Source of the DNA: Octopus sinensis
Taxonomy: Eukaryota
Assembly: GCF_006345805.1 (NCBI RefSeq)
Contig: NC_043023.1
Span: 5,022,001 to 5,086,000 of the forward strand
DNA length: 64,000 nt
Reading direction: 5' to 3'
The notes beneath the pieces are model-generated. The model searched no databases. It was given only the letters and a program-made list of their open reading frames with translations, and was not told the DNA's origin. Below, in pieces: positions 37,384-47,877 of this stretch (positions are counted from its first letter, which is position 1; each line of letters starts with the position of its first letter). The position numbers and the translations under genes are program-made.

Positions 37384-37821
37384 GTAAGTATTGAATTACT
37401 TCCCTTCTCTCTTCAGTGATTTCATTAGCATGGGATGAAGTTTATTTAAAATTTATCCTTTATCTTTCACTTTTTAATTTTTTTTCTTTGTATTTCATTT
37501 ATATGTATGTACATGCACTAACCCTATCTGCTCATGATTGTTATTGTTTGTGTGTGTATGTATGTGTGTGTGTATATGTATATATATATATATATATATA
37601 TATATATATATATAATTATATAAACATAATCAAATAGGGTAATAAAATAAATTATTATTACCAGTGGCCTAGCACAAAAGACAAATTAGTCATTAGCCTA
37701 TATATTTTTCATATAGAAATATAATAAAAGGCTTCCAAATAAGGAAGCGTAGTGCTAGAAACACAAAGGGATAAATTCATGAAAGGAATGAAAATTAAAA
37801 ACATTTACCATCTCAGCTATA

Positions 37822-37897
37822 TCCCCGACCGAACGGTTTCTACCTATTTTTAGCAAACACATAGAATATATTTGCCAGGCCAGGTTCTTCAGTGGGA
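37822..37897 (-). ncRNA. Hammerhead-like motif upstream of the PLE3 fragment
   Basis: Minus strand TCCCA-CTGAAGA-ACCT...AGGT-A-GAAA-CCGTTCGG-TC-GGGGA. Intact core nucleotides; first helix-I pair mismatched. Confidence 0.5.
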
Positions 37898-38158
37898 AGC
37901 CTTCGTAATCCTAGATGCACAGACTGTTAGAAGCACATGTAGATCTAACGGTTTGTATATCCTAACTTTTCAAACCTCTGTGCAGACGCAAACCATATCC
38001 AGCGAACAGAGAGGATGCCGGTAAAAAATTTACGAACAAATTTATCAAGCAATATTTAAACATAATCTAAGTGTAATGATAGCAGAGGTGGAATGTCTGA
38101 ATACATGCTGGTAGATCCATTAGAATAAAAAAATGGACAGATTTTTGCAAATGCAGAT

Positions 38159-38446
38159 ATGAACTGCAAAAGCAGAAATTTGATCTACTGCATTAAATGC
38201 CCGAATTGTGAGGAATTATATATAGGCGAGACAGGGAGTGCATTATCAGAACGCTCACAAGTTCACAGACAACAAATCTAGAACACCAATGTTTGCCAAA
38301 TTCCATTGAGCGAATGTATAGAGACATGTGGTCAGAAAACGTTTCTAATTTTTCCTTTCCACAAACTACAAGACACAAGTGAGGTTGGAAGAAAGATAAA
38401 AGAAAAACGGTTTATTAAAATGTTCAAACCTGTTCTGAACGGAAAT
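38159..38446 (+). mobile_element. Penelope-like element 3, GIY-YIG endonuclease fragment
   Basis: CKSRNLIYCIKCPNCEELYIGETG..LSER...HRQQI*...KEKRFIKMFKPVLN; one in-frame stop. Confidence 0.85.
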
Positions 38447-38998
38447 AACAACAATTATATAACAACCAGTTAATGATGTGGATTAAAAAATATCTCTAAC
38501 ATATGAATTTAAACAAATTACAGAATATCAGTGTGTCAAACAAACCATGATGTTTAAGCTGCATGCAGATTGGTCAAAACCATATTAAAAAAATTCAGCT
38601 TGTTGGTGCGTTTTAAGACGTACCACAGTTGTCAAGAACTCAACTACCAAAAACATTTGAAATCTGATGATTATTCTATGCCTGGAAGCACTAATTTAAC
38701 TTCATGGGCATTACAAAATATTTTTTAATGTTAAAATACTCTTTTACTCTTTTACTTGTTTTAGTCATTTGACTGTGGCCATGCTGGAGCACCACCTTTG
38801 ATCGAGCAACTTGACCCTGGGACTTATTCATTTGTAAGCCCAGTACTTATTCTATCGGTCTCTTTTGCCGAACCGCTAAGTAACGGGGACATAAACACAC
38901 CAGCATCGGTTGTCAAGCAATACTAGGGAGACAAACACAGACACACAAACATACACATGCATATATATATATATTATATATATATATATATATATATA

Positions 38999-39623
38999 CA
39001 TATATACGACAGGCTTCTTTCAGTTTCCATCTACCAAATCCACTGACAAGGCCCGAGGCTATAGTAGAAGACACTTGCCGAAGGTGTCACACAGTGGGAC
39101 TGAACCCGGAACCATGTGGTTGGTAAACAAGCTACTTAACACACAGCCACTCCTGCGACTATAATAAAAATATTATAATATACCATAATAAAAACATGAA
39201 AACTAGACTATGTTTTAACTTTATTCAACTGATATATTATTCTATATACAGTCACACAAAATCGAAACAATATATATATATATATTATATATATATATAT
39301 ATATATATATATATATATATATATAATATATATATACATAATATATATATACATATATACGACAGGCTTCTTTCAGTTTCCATCTACCAAATCCACTGAC
39401 AAGGCCCGAGGCTATAGTAGAAGACACTTGCCGAAGGTGTCACACAGTGGGACTGAACCCGGAACCATGTGGTTGGTAAACAAGCTACTTAACACACAGC
39501 CACTCCTGCGACTATAATAAAAATATTATAATATACCATAATAAAAACATGAAAACTAGACTATGTTTTAACTTTATTCAACTGATATATTATTCTATAT
39601 ACAGTCACACAAAATCGAAACAA
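38999..39623. repeat. Tandem duplication with 353-bp period (SINE A part plus flank) bounded by (TA)n
   Basis: 38999-39270 and 39352-39623 read identically by eye, separated by (TA)n. Confidence 0.85.
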
Positions 39624-41079
39624 TATATATATATATATATATATATATATATATATATATATAATATATATATATATACATAAATATATATATACATAAA
39701 TATTGAATAATGAGAATAAAGAGAAATATTCTCTATTTGTGCATTTTTGTATTAAGGCTACCATTGGTTTCATGTTAAGGAAGACTTCAATAATTGTCAA
39801 GCCTGTCATATGAAACATCAGTGTTCATCTCCATTCTGGATATATATATATATATATAATACTAAAACTCAAAGTTTGTCTGTTTTCCTGCCATTTGATG
39901 AAGATGATAAAGATTACATATAAAATAGTCATTCCCCCCTTTAAGAAAAAAAGAACCAAGTTGAAAATGTCAACACTTCAACTACCATCGTCCGTCCTTT
40001 CTTTTTTCTTTCTTTCTTCTTCCCTTAATCATTTATACAACTTTCAGAGCCTCGTGGACTTGAAAGATAGAAATACTCCCTATGATTTAAAATAAAATAT
40101 TAATCTGTATCATCCTAATCAAAAGACAGAAAGACAGAGAGACTATGTCTTTATAGACAAAGATAATTTGCAATGGGAGGAGCTGAATCTCATAAGAATG
40201 GAAAAAAGAAATGGGTTGTGCCTTACAATGAAATTCTTTTAAGAACATTCTCATTACATTAAAGCACTATACTGACCTTCTAAGCTGGAGGTCAGAGATA
40301 TTTATGAGATGTATACATCTTAAAAAGTTTCTCCTGTCAAATCGGAGAACACCACCTCACTGGATCAGATGCACATTAACCTTTATCCTATTCAGCTATT
40401 TGACATCTTCTAGATCACCTTTGTTCCAAAAATAATGTGAAAATAAAATATTAAGGGAAAGGGAATAATATATTTTCATCATTAACAATATTCTTCCTCT
40501 ATAGGTAAGATTTTTTTGGCACCCCCAACCCTTACAATTTGTTTAACCCTTTCGTTACCAACCTGGCTGAAACTGGCTCTGGCTCTGAGTACAAATGTCT
40601 TGTTTTCATAAGTTTTGAATTAAAATCTTCCACCAAACTTTAGTCACAATTTATGTTCTTAACACTAGCTGCATGATAACTAAGTGATTTTACTAAATTC
40701 TTTGTTATATTTAAAGTAATGGAAAGAAACACAGAGCATCTCAAAATAAATATGGTAATGAAAGGGTTAAGATATACAATAGAGAAACAATTCTTAACCC
40801 TTTTGATACCAACCCTGCTGAAACTGGTTCTGGCTCTTTAGTACAAATGTCTTGTTTAAATAAGTTTTGAATTAAAATCTTCCACCAAACCTTAGCCACA
40901 ATTTATCTTCCTAACACTAGCTGAATGATAACTAAGTTGTTTCACTAAATTCTGTATTATATTCAAAATAATTGAAAGAAACACAGAGCATCTTAAAATA
41001 AATACGGTAATGAAAGGGTTAAAGAGCTATACCTAGCATCCAAGAATGGAATTATCCCCCTTCCCCTCAGAACATTTTT

Positions 41080-45636: not shown

Positions 45637-45743
45637 TCCACGCTGAAGAGAAAAGAAGTTTCGGTAAGATAGAATTATTTAATATTTAATATTTTAATTC
45701 TTATGCTTTCCTAAAACTTGATTTCGAAACGTACGTCCGTGGA
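45637..45743 (+). ncRNA. Hammerhead ribozyme, array unit 2
   Basis: Same motif; predicted cut after C45737. Confidence 0.85.
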
Positions 45744-46236
45744 TAACTTTAAAAATGTTTGATAGATTGCGGTTAATTCATTCTCTCTTACCTGTTTGTG
45801 TCAGCCTTCCAATTGCTGTTTTTACTGAGATCTCCCTTTTTAGTAGAAGAAATAGCTATAACCCTTTGACTGCTATTTCTAAATTCGGTATGTGGTAAGG
45901 CAATTCGTTGCTGAACCCTTATTGCTTAGTATTACTTAAATTTTCCTCAAATGAGGCTTTTACATGCCGAAGACTACTTGGTGTAATTGATAATTATTCC
46001 AAATTAATTAATTTCACCCTTCATTATTACGGATAACCATATTTTATCTCAGTAGATGACCACAGCATCTTGTTTTGGCTACACGCGGGTGGGAAGGGGC
46101 TGTTGACACAATCGTTTCATTCACAATTTGAATTCGGTGATACTAGTTGAGGATTCTAGCTCGCTCTGATACTGAGTTGAGTTGGTACCTCCTAGTATCT
46201 CAAAATTCAATATATAATCATTTATGATTATAGTAT

Positions 46237-46343
46237 TCCACGCTGAAGAGAAAAGAAGTTTCGGTAAGATAGAATTATTTAATATTTAATATTTTAATTC
46301 TTATGCTTTCCTAAAACTTGATTTCGAAACGTACGTCCGTGGA
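46237..46343 (+). ncRNA. Hammerhead ribozyme, array unit 3
   Basis: Same motif; predicted cut after C46337. Confidence 0.85.
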
Positions 46344-47326
46344 TAACTTTAAAAATGTTTGATAGATTGCGGTTAATTCATTCTCTCTTACCTGTTTGTG
46401 TCAGCCTTCCAATTGCTGTTTTTACTGAGATCTCCCTTTTTAGTAGAAGAAATAGCTATAACCCTTTGACTGCTATTTCTAAATTCGGTATGTGGTAAGG
46501 CAATTCGTTGCTGAACCCTTATTGCTTAGTATATATATATATATATATATATATATATATATATATTATATATATATATATATATATATTATATATATAT
46601 ATATATATATATATATATATATATATTATATATATATATATATTATATATATATATATATATATATATATATATATGTGTATATATGTGTGGAGGCGCAA
46701 TGGCCCAGTGGTTAGGGCAGTGGACTCGCGGTTGTAGGATTGCGGTTTCGATTCCCAGACCGGGCGTTGTGAGTGTTTTTTGAGCGAAAACACCTAAAAG
46801 CTCCACGAGGTCATCCCTGCTGTACTCTTTCACCACTCTTTCTCTTACTCTTTCTTCTGTTGGCCTGCTCGCTTAGCCAGCGGGGTGGCGTCATTCGGAG
46901 GCTAAAACAGTGTGAACGCATTGTGACCAGCGATGTGTAACAACATCTGATGTCTGGTCGGTCACGTGATGTATATATATATATATATATACATGCGTAG
47001 TAAAAATAAAAATATAGCAGTGTAACACAATTGGATATACCAATTTTACATATTAAAAACATTCCTGCCAACTGGTAATGTACATATTGATTGTTGGTAA
47101 GGACACTGTTTTACGTTATGTGACCATAATATATTACGAAATATATAAAAACTCTTCATAAGTCAATACTGTGTCCTACCTGTGTTAGCAGTGCAATTCA
47201 GTCACTTTTTAAAGTTATCTCTGCAGATTTACTATAGAAATTAGAGCTAGCACAGAAAGGGGTTGATTCGCACTGCTAACACAGGTAGGACACAGTATTA
47301 ACCTATAAAGCCTTTAATATATTTGG

Positions 47327-47737
47327 TACTCTTTTACTCTTGTTTCAGTCATTTGACTGTGGCCATGCTGGAGCACCGCCTTTAGTCGAGCAAATCGACC
47401 CCGGGACTTATTCTTTGTAAGCCCAGTACTTATTCTATTGGTCTCTTTTGCTGAACCGCTAAGTGACAGGGACGTAAACACACCAGCATCGGTTGTCAAA
47501 CAATGCTAGGGGGACACACACGGACACACACACACACACACACACACATACATATATATATATATACATATATACGACAGGCTTCTTTCAGTTTCTGTCT
47601 ACCAAATCCACTCACAAGGCTTTGGTTGGCCCGGGGCTATAGCAGAAGACACTTGCCCAAGATGCCACGCAGTGGGACTGAACCCGGAACCATGTGGTTG
47701 GTTAGCAAGCTACTTACCACACAGCCACTCCTGCGCC
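47327..47737 (-). mobile_element. SINE family A, full length
   Basis: Reverse complement of the complete family A consensus, ending 140 bp upstream of CHSY exon 2. Confidence 0.9.
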
Positions 47738-47877
47738 TATAGTAGTATATTGTGGTTGCATAACGATGCAAGATGTCCTTGCCAGCAATCAATTTATATT
47801 CTAGGTCAGGTTACTGTAACAGCATAATAATCCCAGTCAAGTATTCAATATGTCTTCTTTTGTTGTTCTTTTTTCAG

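Follow-up and report, generated by a model that had tools for sequence, protein, structure and literature searches.

The window, the whole 64-kb stretch of Octopus sinensis DNA (CM016885.1) that was analysed, contains a CHSY1-like gene whose Fringe and CHGN domains were located on the + strand by a Pfam search. The coding part of exon 1 (37183–37383, + strand) was delimited by its match to XP_029652132.1 and by homology to the N-termini of a paralogue (P0002) and of the O. bimaculoides orthologue (P0015). This exon encodes a short cytoplasmic tail and a signal anchor, and it is intact in O. vulgaris. The NCBI model starts at the ATG at 37183, a second in-frame ATG lies at 37258, and the exon ends at 37383. 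Intron 1 (37384–47877, + strand, phase 0, GT...AG) opens with a GTAAGT donor at 37384 and closes with a polypyrimidine tract and an AG ending at 47877; exon 2 (47878–48367, + strand), which encodes the Fringe-like domain, follows in frame with exon 1. The intron, 10,494 bp long, agrees with the NCBI model and with the paralogue N-terminus, and upholds the first intron of about 10.5 kb proposed in the initial annotation. The joining of exon 1 to 47878, the point at which that proposal could have failed, is the annotated one in XP_029652132.1: the predicted spliced protein is 100% identical to this entry over 100% of its predicted length, and the entry differs only by 25 extra residues from the upstream ATG. 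An alternative CHSY model in O. vulgaris has a more distant first exon and an unchanged exon-2 acceptor. Since this acceptor is common to both first-exon models, the motifs described below are intronic under either of them.

A strict hammerhead descriptor (helix I of at least 4 bp, CUGANGA, a closed helix II, GAA, an A...U helix III and H17) gives four matches in the window, all on the + strand and all within CHSY intron 1, as had been claimed. Hammerhead 1 (43877–43961) is a type I motif composed of helix I GUUUUC/GAAAAU, CUGAUGA, a 54-nt helix II, GAA and the palindrome ACAUAUGU. Hammerhead 2 (45039–45145) is composed of helix I UCCACG/CGUGGA, CUGAAGA, a 76-nt helix II, GAA and the palindrome ACGUACGU, and hammerheads 3 (45637–45743) and 4 (46237–46343) have the same sequence. 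The cores start at 43883, 45045, 45643 and 46243, and cleavage is predicted after C17 at 43955, 45139, 45737 and 46337, respectively. Three of the positions given earlier (45039, 45637 and 46237) are the starts of helix I; the fourth was given as 43870, and helix I of hammerhead 1 starts at 43877. The last three motifs are identical over 121 nt, so the four sites represent two independent sequences. Both types have an 8-nt palindromic helix III and are therefore probably dimer-dependent, Penelope-like element (PLE)-style hammerheads, a kind described as slow in published work; by its predicted pairing, this helix favours a two-ribozyme 'double hammerhead'.

Hammerhead 1 lies in the remains of a PLE. 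The coding remnant (41736–43587, − strand) is dead, 5′-truncated and broken into three frame pieces. Its GIY-YIG match scores 23.0 bits against the Pfam cut-off of 22.6; the reverse transcriptase (RT) motifs were identified by eye, since the fragments are short and frame-broken and gave no RT domain in Pfam. A homologue search with the PLE ORF returned only two O. sinensis proteins, both with uninformative names. The 3′ tail of this minus-strand copy (41080–41393) is a 98% inverted match to 43611–43924; of the hammerhead it retains just the 5′ half, with CUGAUGA at about 41121–41115, and its homology ends within helix II at about 41080. A second tail copy (43611–44160, + strand), inverted and heavily 5′-truncated, stands head-to-head with the ORF copy, and its 3′ end adjoins a (TA)n tract at about 44160–44178. 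Only this tail keeps the complete hammerhead (cleavage after 43955), which is antisense to the remaining ORF; in the family copies L006/L007 and L008 the ORF and then the hammerhead-bearing tail lie on one strand. All of the PLE tail copies end on (TA)n. In an alignment of five independent copies (A1), 92.4% of cells are paired, compared with about 40% in slid controls, and 4 pairs are compensatory; the covariation score is 0.166, compared with 0.098, and was attained by 2 of 500 shuffles. Thus, hammerhead 1 is a member of a PLE-tail hammerhead family, and its fold is backed by covariation over five copies.

Hammerheads 2–4 belong to a 599-bp non-autonomous, retrozyme-like element that forms a tandem array of 3.2 units of 598–600 bp (44611–46532, + strand). 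The array is bordered on its 5′ edge by an (AT)n tract (44586–44610), at the tail of a SINE, and on its 3′ edge by a (TA)~80 tract (46530–46686). Relative to the C17 sites, it is divided into lengths of 528, 598, 600 and 195 nt. No autonomous partner of the 599-nt family was identified, and an exact-match look-up of a monomer ORF in public assemblies returned nothing. Partial copies of the same family (about 80% identity) form a head-to-head inverted pair at 55173–55646 in CHSY intron 3; the centre of this pair is the helix III palindrome and the cleavage-site region, the outer end of each copy is on (TA)n, and the pair has no catalytic core. The array, the 55-kb arm and a 60-kb arm end at one homologous position on (TA)n, a repeat within which target-site duplications are unreadable.

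Comparison of intron 1 between O. sinensis and O. vulgaris shows colinear sequences of about 97.5% identity, except at 44611–46662. The array is absent from O. vulgaris and O. bimaculoides at the compared locus and is a recent, O. sinensis-specific insertion; the 599-nt family has evidently been mobile since the two sister species split. At the same (TA)n tract, O. vulgaris has an unrelated 784-bp insert with a hammerhead of its own, and O. bimaculoides has neither this insert nor the array. The PLE, the array and the O. vulgaris insert all end on (TA)n, and the 43.9-kb motif is common only to O. sinensis and O. vulgaris. We consider it quite probable that the hammerheads were carried into CHSY intron 1 by two retroelements that inserted separately at (TA)n tracts, which is the best explanation of the whole; hammerhead-bearing Penelope-type retroelements are an already known kind of element. 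Before the species split, a PLE would have inserted on the minus strand as a 5′-truncated RT/GIY-YIG copy, with a second copy, inverted and tail-only, adjoining its 5′ end. After the split, in the O. sinensis lineage only, the 599-nt element would have inserted as a 3.2-unit concatemer, most likely by target-primed reverse transcription of its RNA by a PLE enzyme that could have started at a fixed UA-rich site and made about three rounds of a circular or multimeric template. (TA)n is among the preferred targets of PLEs, for which inverted 5′-truncated copies have been described (PMC8557442), and a PLE cleaves AT-rich DNA and starts reverse transcription internally (PMC11167929).

A rival reading takes the motifs for chance occurrences of a loose consensus. 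Rfam is silent at the gathering score and also at E ≤ 10 on 5.4 kb, and a looser scan gives extra matches at 19500 and at 50997, the latter within CHSY exon 3. However, when the Hammerhead_1 model RF00163 (gathering score 34) is aligned to 43877–43961 or 45039–45145 alone, it runs end to end over model positions 1–45 of 45 with 26.8 and 21.6 bits, scores that remain below threshold because of 50- and 72-nt insertions in helix II (54–76 nt). The strict descriptor is expected to match by chance 0.05 times per window (mean of 400 first-order Markov windows), compared with the four matches observed, and none of the 400 simulated windows has a palindromic helix III. The same architecture also recurs in three further unrelated octopus elements. 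A chance match is thus effectively refuted by the simulation, the RF00163 alignments and the covariation over five independent copies, and all four are genuine PLE-style hammerheads of type I, combining a long helix II with a palindromic helix III of 8 nt. For the array, a single unit may instead have inserted and then multiplied in place, through unequal crossing-over or replication slippage, as in the birth of a satellite. The units are 99.3–99.5% identical, the 0.5–0.7% of differences including small indels, and a 2026 preprint makes the case for tandem repeats being seeded by the terminal sequences of PLEs and growing by unequal crossover (10.64898/2026.07.22.740005). However, the array begins at an arbitrary point of the unit, like a 5′ truncation, and its end, 195 nt past the last cleavage site, falls exactly on the 3′ terminus common to the family at (TA)n, as expected from one continuous cDNA of a multimeric or circular template; we therefore regard local expansion as unlikely, with perhaps one chance in a few.

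Both carrier elements lie in sense, so all four motifs should be present in the CHSY pre-mRNA; as every such pre-mRNA would include them, host transcription could supply ribozyme-bearing RNA, in line with the initial annotation. That annotation went further, suggesting that the intron could be cut up to four times co-transcriptionally, which might affect splicing and expression. In the strong form of this idea, efficient cutting of the nascent intron, at as many as four sites, would precede the recognition of exon 2, lowering exon 1–2 splicing and tuning or impairing CHSY expression, with CHSY transcription driving the formation of monomers and circles. In its favour, all of the motifs are complete and on the sense strand, the young and identical array ribozymes dimerize well in silico, and the last and first cleavage sites lie 1,541 and 3,923 nt upstream of exon 2, respectively. 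There is natural precedent in the intronic Cpeb3 ribozyme, which tunes mRNA and protein levels (PMC10919898), and canonical hammerheads of invertebrate retrozymes reach about 0.8 per min (PMC7229834). However, PLE hammerheads whose helix III is palindromic are reported to lack activity as monomers and to cleave only weakly as dimers or trimers (PMC4209133), and in an Anolis PLE cleavage is protein-assisted and no RNA-seq reads ended where it occurs (PMC11167929). According to PMC2995048 and PMC10919898, Dye 2006 and Fong 2009 found that only fast ribozymes abort splicing and that an intron cut by a slower hammerhead splices normally; at mammalian elongation rates, a polymerase covers the 1.5–3.9 kb to exon 2 within one or two minutes. 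The CHSY coding exons are 99–100% identical between O. sinensis, with the array, and O. vulgaris, without it, and the ORF is intact. A nearby CHSY paralogue also has a sense hammerhead in its intron 3, suggesting that such insertions are tolerated. Nothing in these findings supports four co-transcriptional cuts with consequences for splicing or expression, and efficient cutting is, on this evidence, improbable. We give more weight to the opposite extreme, that all four motifs are catalytically dead fossils in a neutral intronic repeat and undergo no cleavage in vivo, but still think it doubtful. It would suit the 43.9-kb hammerhead, a weak family member with A·C, G·A and C·C mismatches in the five-copy alignment, a free MFE structure that is a competing fold, no partner with its palindrome, and a frame-broken, truncated carrier PLE. 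Other family members have core or helix lesions (for example C11.1>G in L008), and the low activity reported for PLE hammerheads points the same way. In contrast, the array motif, present in three identical young copies of an evidently mobile family, keeps all of the conserved core nucleotides, a perfect palindrome and a helix I of 6 bp, and its free MFE structure is already the hammerhead fold. In its predicted homodimer, the two molecules pair precisely through the 8-bp helix III, which brings a gain of about 12 kcal/mol. No loop–loop tertiary contact is obvious in its 76-nt helix II, so its activity is uncertain. Between these extremes, we favour a reading in which the array ribozymes could pair via their palindrome and probably cleave at a low-to-moderate rate, whereas the lone 43.9-kb motif, mismatched and predicted to misfold, is probably nearly inert. 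Cleavage of the array would free RNAs of 598 and 600 nt, which a host ligase could circularize. These RNAs have a very stable predicted fold: the circular 598-nt monomer (34% GC) is predicted at −165.7 kcal/mol with 66% of bases paired, compared with −118.9 ± 5.6 for shuffles (z = −8.4). Any net effect on exon 1–2 splicing is probably small.

The closest known counterparts are the minimal or atypical hammerheads in PLE pseudo-LTRs (3′ tails) (Cervera & de la Pena 2014, PMC4209133; Craig et al. 2021, PMC8557442). Common to both are the type I topology, an enlarged helix II and a small palindromic helix III, which implies that the motifs act as dimers; in both, the motif also lies close to the 3′ end of an RT and GIY-YIG element that has an inverted 5′-truncated partner copy and is inserted beside (TA)n. 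Their helix II stems are 6–8 bp, compared with 54 nt here and 76–85 nt in the non-autonomous relatives; the octopus motifs also differ in having a full 6-bp helix I, and the octopus PLE copy is dead, with its hammerhead antisense to the remaining ORF. The array resembles the non-LTR retrozymes of metazoans, which are tandem repeats bearing type I hammerheads and give rise to circular RNAs (Cervera & de la Pena 2020, PMC7229834; Li et al. 2026 preprint, 10.64898/2026.07.22.740005), in its head-to-tail units with one type I hammerhead each, low GC content, lack of coding capacity, stable predicted circular fold, co-occurrence with PLEs and PLE-like insertion signatures. However, retrozyme units are about 170–400 nt with a canonical 4-bp helix II and loop–loop contacts, whereas the octopus array, known from DNA sequence, has 599-nt units and a PLE-style hammerhead. 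In Xenopus, retrozyme-like elements are rarer in introns than in intergenic DNA, yet about 43% of copies are intronic (same two sources).

A sense-strand self-cleaving motif (predicted here) in an intron of a protein-coding gene is also seen in the amniote HH9/HH10 hammerheads (de la Pena & Garcia-Robles 2010, as cited in PMC7229834) and the HDV-like Cpeb3 ribozyme (PMC10919898), for which competition between intron scission and splicing was tested. HH9/HH10 and Cpeb3 are present once each, with deep conservation at orthologous positions, and are active as monomers. The octopus motifs differ from them as transposon cargo that is seemingly dimer-dependent, with a species-specific array and a further motif found in the sister species only. 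The octopus array is also like newt satellite 2 and Schistosoma SM-alpha (discussed in PMC7229834 and PMC4209133) in its tandem type I hammerheads and palindromic helix III. Both are transcribed tandem repeats whose type I hammerheads have a palindromic, weak helix III and cleave as dimers. They form high-copy satellites or SINE-like families of about 330 bp, whereas the array is a 3.2-unit intronic insertion with a 599-bp unit.

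The window belongs to the Octopus sinensis chromosome record CM016885.1. A strict hammerhead descriptor (a helix I of 4 bp or more, CUGANGA, helix II closed, GAA, helix III with A...U, and H17) matches exactly four sites in the 64 kb, every one of them on the + strand. Their cores begin at 43883, 45045, 45643 and 46243, and the predicted cuts follow C43955, C45139, C45737 and C46337, respectively. The chance level is 0.05 matches per window, calculated as the mean of 400 Markov-1 simulated windows with the same dinucleotide statistics, and a palindromic helix III occurs in none of these 400 windows. 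The starts reported in the initial annotation (43870, 45039, 45637 and 46237) coincide with the starts of helix I to within 7 nt. A looser scan adds only two matches, at 19500 and 50997 (the latter within CHSY exon 3), which are obviously due to chance. All four sites carry the conserved type I catalytic core, CUGA(U/A)GA ... GAA A...U C, assessed as C3 U4 G5 A6 N7 G8 A9, G12 A13 A14, A15.1–U16.1 and H17. The three helices follow the type I order, with an open helix I of 6 bp and helix II as a closed hairpin. Hammerheads 2–4 are identical across 121 nt, and the four sites therefore represent two independent sequences.

Regarding the covariance models, RF00163 (Hammerhead_1) aligns at all of its positions (1–45 of 45) to both motif types when the motif intervals are searched alone. 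The scores are 26.8 bits at 43877–43961 (hammerhead 1) and 21.6 bits at 45039–45145 (hammerhead 2), compared with a gathering threshold of 34; these low values arise because helix II carries insertions of 50 and 72 nt. Rfam gave no hammerhead match in the whole window at the gathering score, and no hammerhead was found at E<=10 in the 5.4 kb between 42.5 and 47.9 kb. The motifs thus have the core and the helices of a type I hammerhead, yet lie below the Rfam threshold. Only searches of very small intervals matched, and Rfam by itself would have led to the finding being wrongly discarded.

The host gene is a chondroitin sulfate synthase gene on the + strand, in which Pfam identifies Fringe and CHGN domains on the exons 47878–48367, 50965–51119 and 56797–58299; the last of these matches CHGN with E = 3e-96. 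Exon 1 ends at 37383 and is followed by GTAAGT, and a polypyrimidine tract and AG lead up to 47877, giving an in-frame join and an intron 1 of 10,494 bp (37384–47877). The spliced 757-aa product is 100% identical, along its entire length, to XP_029652132.1, 'chondroitin sulfate synthase 1-like [Octopus sinensis]', which differs only by 25 extra residues from an in-frame upstream ATG at 37183. The N-termini of both a CHSY paralogue (P0002) and the orthologue in O. bimaculoides (P0015) are homologous to the exon-1 peptide, and in O. vulgaris exon 1 is intact and its donor is conserved. The O. vulgaris annotation CAI9743302.1 has an 11-aa first exon ~33 kb upstream (L002:3001 in the O. vulgaris locus), which uses the same exon-2 acceptor, and the conserved signal-anchor exon 1, intact at L002:27223–27423, is unused in it. 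This is probably a difference of annotation and not of biology. Exon 1, which had been predicted in the initial annotation, splices to 47878 as in XP_029652132.1, and the sense, intronic placement proposed there for the four motifs holds under every model compared, namely our own, XP_029652132.1 and the O. vulgaris annotation.

Hammerhead 1, the 43.9-kb motif, belongs to the tail of a Penelope-like element (PLE). The segment 43611–43924 has an inverted copy at 41080–41393 (314 nt, 98% identity), and the two copies bracket an ORF, present as minus-strand pieces at 41736–43587. By eye, these frame-broken pieces show the RT motifs FDISSFYPSI, MGS, YQDD and FLDV, followed by an N-rich low-complexity insert and then a C-terminal GIY-YIG endonuclease. 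The latter scores 23.0 bits against a Pfam cut-off of 22.6 once the low-complexity part is trimmed; on the short RT fragments, Pfam gave no RT match even at E<=10. PLEs are recognised by an RT followed by a GIY-YIG at the C-terminus, a partner copy that is inverted and 5'-truncated, and a hammerhead close to the 3' end (PMC8557442, PMC4209133); the inverted, 5'-truncated copy observed here agrees with the pseudo-LTR arrangement described in PMC8557442. A homologue search with the C-terminal ORF of the element yielded no more than two proteins, both from O. sinensis, uninformatively named and lacking domains; these led to independent family copies (loci L006/L007 and L008) of 70–74% nucleotide identity. 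In these copies the ORF is followed by a tail with a hammerhead region on the same strand, that is, the 3'-tail hammerhead lies on the sense strand of the element as in PLEs. More PLE-tail copies are found in the loci of paralogous CHSY genes (L004:20193 and L005:32837). The (TA)n tract abuts the 3' end in all five tail copies, which corresponds to the microsatellite bias of PLEs.

The alignment of five tail copies has 92.4% of its cells paired, compared with ~40% when the partners are slid. Four pairs are changed on both sides, and helices I and II show covariation with a score of 0.166 versus 0.098, a value reached in 2 of 500 shuffles; the alignment supports the predicted hammerhead fold of the PLE-tail family. 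Within this family the copy in the window is a weak member. It contains the mismatches A.C, G.A and C.C, folding without constraint gives a competing structure as the MFE, and there is no partner with its palindrome. The minus-strand tail copy breaks off within helix II. The element is therefore a PLE that is dead and truncated at its 5' end, and it is the inverted, tail-only copy that holds the + strand hammerhead. The whole composite is present in O. vulgaris with 99% identity, and none of it is present in O. bimaculoides. A 252-bp tandem repeat at 40543–41022 (1.9 copies, 89% identity) lies ~60 bp past the break of the minus-strand tail and may be the insertion that truncated it.

Hammerheads 2–4 (45039–45145, 45637–45743 and 46237–46343) lie in an array at 44611–46532, consisting of 3.2 head-to-tail units of 598–600 bp with 99.3–99.5% identity. 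The array was missed by TRF, with its period limit of 500 bp, and was recovered by repeat search and blastn. Each unit contains one hammerhead, composed of helix I UCCACG/CGUGGA, CUGAAGA, a 76-nt helix II, GAA and ACGUACGU, then C. The free MFE of this motif is already the hammerhead fold, and its calculated homodimer has an intermolecular helix III of exactly 8 bp with a gain of ~12 kcal/mol. Heterodimers between the two hammerhead types were considered and rejected, since ACAUAUGU and ACGUACGU are mutually non-complementary. The circular 598-nt monomer has an MFE of -165.7 kcal/mol, with z = -8.4 relative to shuffles (-118.9 +/- 5.6); its GC is 34%, and 66% of its bases are paired. All ORFs within the units are of 55 aa or less, and a 47-aa monomer ORF, looked up by exact match to reveal transcripts or further copies, was not on record.

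Among known systems, the present motifs come closest to the hammerheads of PLE tails and to metazoan non-LTR retrozymes. The traits of the retrozymes, including a unit range of ~170–400 nt, are described in PMC7229834; such elements are expressed as monomer RNAs, both linear and circular. Like the retrozymes, the array is tandem, non-coding and low in GC with a type I hammerhead in each unit, and its monomer is predicted to be highly self-paired. The unit of 598–600 nt lies outside ~170–400 nt (repeats of 150–450 bp). Helix II forms an imperfect hairpin of 76 nt in place of the canonical 4-bp helix with loop 1–loop 2 contacts, so that the motif is PLE-style. The array therefore shares most of the retrozyme features and departs from them in unit size and in helix II.

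In intron 1, the O. sinensis and O. vulgaris sequences are colinear at ~97.5% on both sides of the array, up to 44611 from the donor and onwards from 46662 to the acceptor. The space between the same pair of (TA)n tracts is filled in O. vulgaris by an unrelated single-copy insert of 784 bp (L002:34279–35062), which contains a hammerhead of its own on the + strand (core at L002:34762, CUGAAGA, a weak helix I, a very stable 85-nt helix II and the palindrome ACAGCUGU). O. bimaculoides has the orthologous SINE tail without the insert and without (TA)n. Since the array is found only in O. sinensis, and not in O. vulgaris or O. bimaculoides, it is a lineage-specific insertion younger than the species split. 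The comparison of the three loci points to one microsatellite struck twice, independently, by different hammerhead-bearing elements in sister species. Conservation of orthologous intronic motifs in distant species, as for HH9/HH10, is not seen here; the array occurs in O. sinensis only, and the PLE motif is shared only with its sister species, O. vulgaris.

CHSY intron 3 contains partial copies from the family of the array monomer as well, in the form of a head-to-head inverted pair at 55173–55646; a related copy lies at 60631–60878. The array and these 55-kb and 60-kb copies have their 3' ends at one and the same homologous position, on (TA)n. The arms of the 55-kb pair start in the helix III/cleavage region and share the 3' terminus of the array, as expected of PLE-type head-to-head cDNA copies. 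These ends contradict a unit generated by tandem duplication of random intron sequence. They likewise contradict a MITE-derived satellite, which was considered as the 55-kb relative is a TA-flanked foldback. Relative to its cleavage sites, the array reads 528 + 598 + 600 + 195 nt. PLE biochemistry includes cleavage of AT-rich DNA and internally initiated reverse transcription (PMC11167929), and a single cDNA would start at a fixed UA-rich internal site and make about three turns around a circular or multimeric RNA; the observed pattern fits such a one-cDNA origin. We infer that the array arose by rolling-circle reverse transcription, with local expansion through unequal crossing-over as a possible alternative. 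At the 55-kb pair, the arm junction (~55446–55470) consists of the helix III palindrome ACGTACGT and the cleavage-site region, and one possibility is that the palindrome mediates template switching or foldback in PLE-type insertion. The palindrome is absent at two other inverted junctions (~43600 in the window and ~20148 in L004), so its presence at junctions is not a general rule.

As both elements are inserted in sense, all four motifs are part of the CHSY pre-mRNA. If cleavage took place at each of them, exon 1 would keep 6,572 nt of the intron and exon 2 an intron tail of 1,540 nt, and the pieces between these would be a fragment of 1,184 nt and two monomers (598 and 600 nt). That an intronic ribozyme might compete with splicing is an idea with HH9/HH10 and Cpeb3 as its precedents. 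For the four motifs, the published data point to low cleavage rates. PLE-style hammerheads that have a palindromic helix III show no activity as monomers and weak activity as dimers or trimers (PMC4209133). Among the four motifs, the three of the array could form dimers with one another. An Anolis PLE hammerhead needed the protein of the element and was dispensable for insertion, and RNA-seq of this element showed no read ends at the cleavage site (PMC11167929). According to Dye 2006 and Fong 2009 (cited in PMC2995048 and PMC10919898), splicing is aborted by fast ribozymes only, and proceeds normally when the hammerhead that cuts the intron is slow. From the Cpeb3 analysis in PMC10919898, a ribozyme competing over the 1.5–3.9 kb to exon 2 would need a rate of ~1 per min.

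The coding exons are 99–100% identical between species with and without the array. The CHSY paralogue has a sense hammerhead in its intron 3 and tolerates it, and in Xenopus ~43% of retrozyme copies are intronic, yet depleted relative to intergenic DNA (10.64898/2026.07.22.740005). A meaningful effect of the motifs on CHSY is therefore unlikely, and the expected effect is small. Some monomer RNA may plausibly be released by host read-through. Slimmer still are the chances that the array is efficiently cleaved from the CHSY pre-mRNA, with CHSY transcription driving ~600-nt circles and exon 1–2 splicing lowered in O. sinensis only. Such a case would represent a recent, transposon-delivered ribozyme switch on a glycosaminoglycan synthase.

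In O. vulgaris PLEs have been annotated already (PMC13282606), and the literature searched contains such PLE annotations only, with no report of hammerheads or retrozymes in Octopus. The present locus is a documented case of PLE-type hammerheads and a retrozyme-like array within a cephalopod gene, and it shows that elements of this sort moved after O. sinensis and O. vulgaris had split. By itself it reveals no new mechanism, as intronic self-cleaving ribozymes, PLE hammerheads and retrozymes have all been described before. At one intronic (TA)n the three species form a natural allelic series. O. sinensis carries an array with three hammerheads and O. vulgaris one different hammerhead insert, and in O. 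bimaculoides the site is empty. The main value is that of a natural experiment, in which cleavage, circular RNA and any effect on splicing can be compared without engineering in a conserved gene, within an intron otherwise identical at 97.5%.

Three further hammerheads of the same design lie in the paralogous CHSY loci, at L004:20193, L004:26541 and L005:32837, all on the + strand; one of them is in sense in intron 3 of the paralogue, and one, with the palindrome ACGAUCGU, is of another family. In the loci not picked for PLE content, hammerheads occur at a density of ~1 per 25–30 kb, and all six complete hammerhead insertions, including four of four intronic ones, are on the gene-sense strand. 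These cases are too few for a claim of strand bias (one-sided p ~0.06 for the intronic insertions). A segmental duplication, 54000–55668 and 58578–60907, brackets CHSY exon 4 with 93–98% identity at an offset of 4.55–5.24 kb, and each copy contains an ORF with the look of a C2H2 zinc finger (54306–54698 and 58766–59209). The O. vulgaris locus contains exon 4 twice, at L002:44945 and 51520. In the 3' part of intron 1, a long, near-perfect hairpin at 47148–47314 matches Rfam MIR5512 on both strands with 60.8 and 41.1 bits versus a gathering score of 139, and is probably a foldback or MITE-like repeat and not a microRNA gene. Upstream of CHSY, retroelement remnants on the minus strand (30396–32757) look like an LTR-type element, with sub-threshold Pfam matches to an integrase core, a zinc-binding domain and RVT_1, and with DUF7047 above threshold; they coincide with a GC-rich block at 30–34 kb, where GC jumps to 46–50%. 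A 309-aa ORF at 17788–18714 (+) has a weak reverse-transcriptase match, and a 703-aa open frame with leucine-rich repeats at 3–2111 (+) continues past the left edge of the window. Lastly, the 100 N at 61327–61426 mark an assembly gap.
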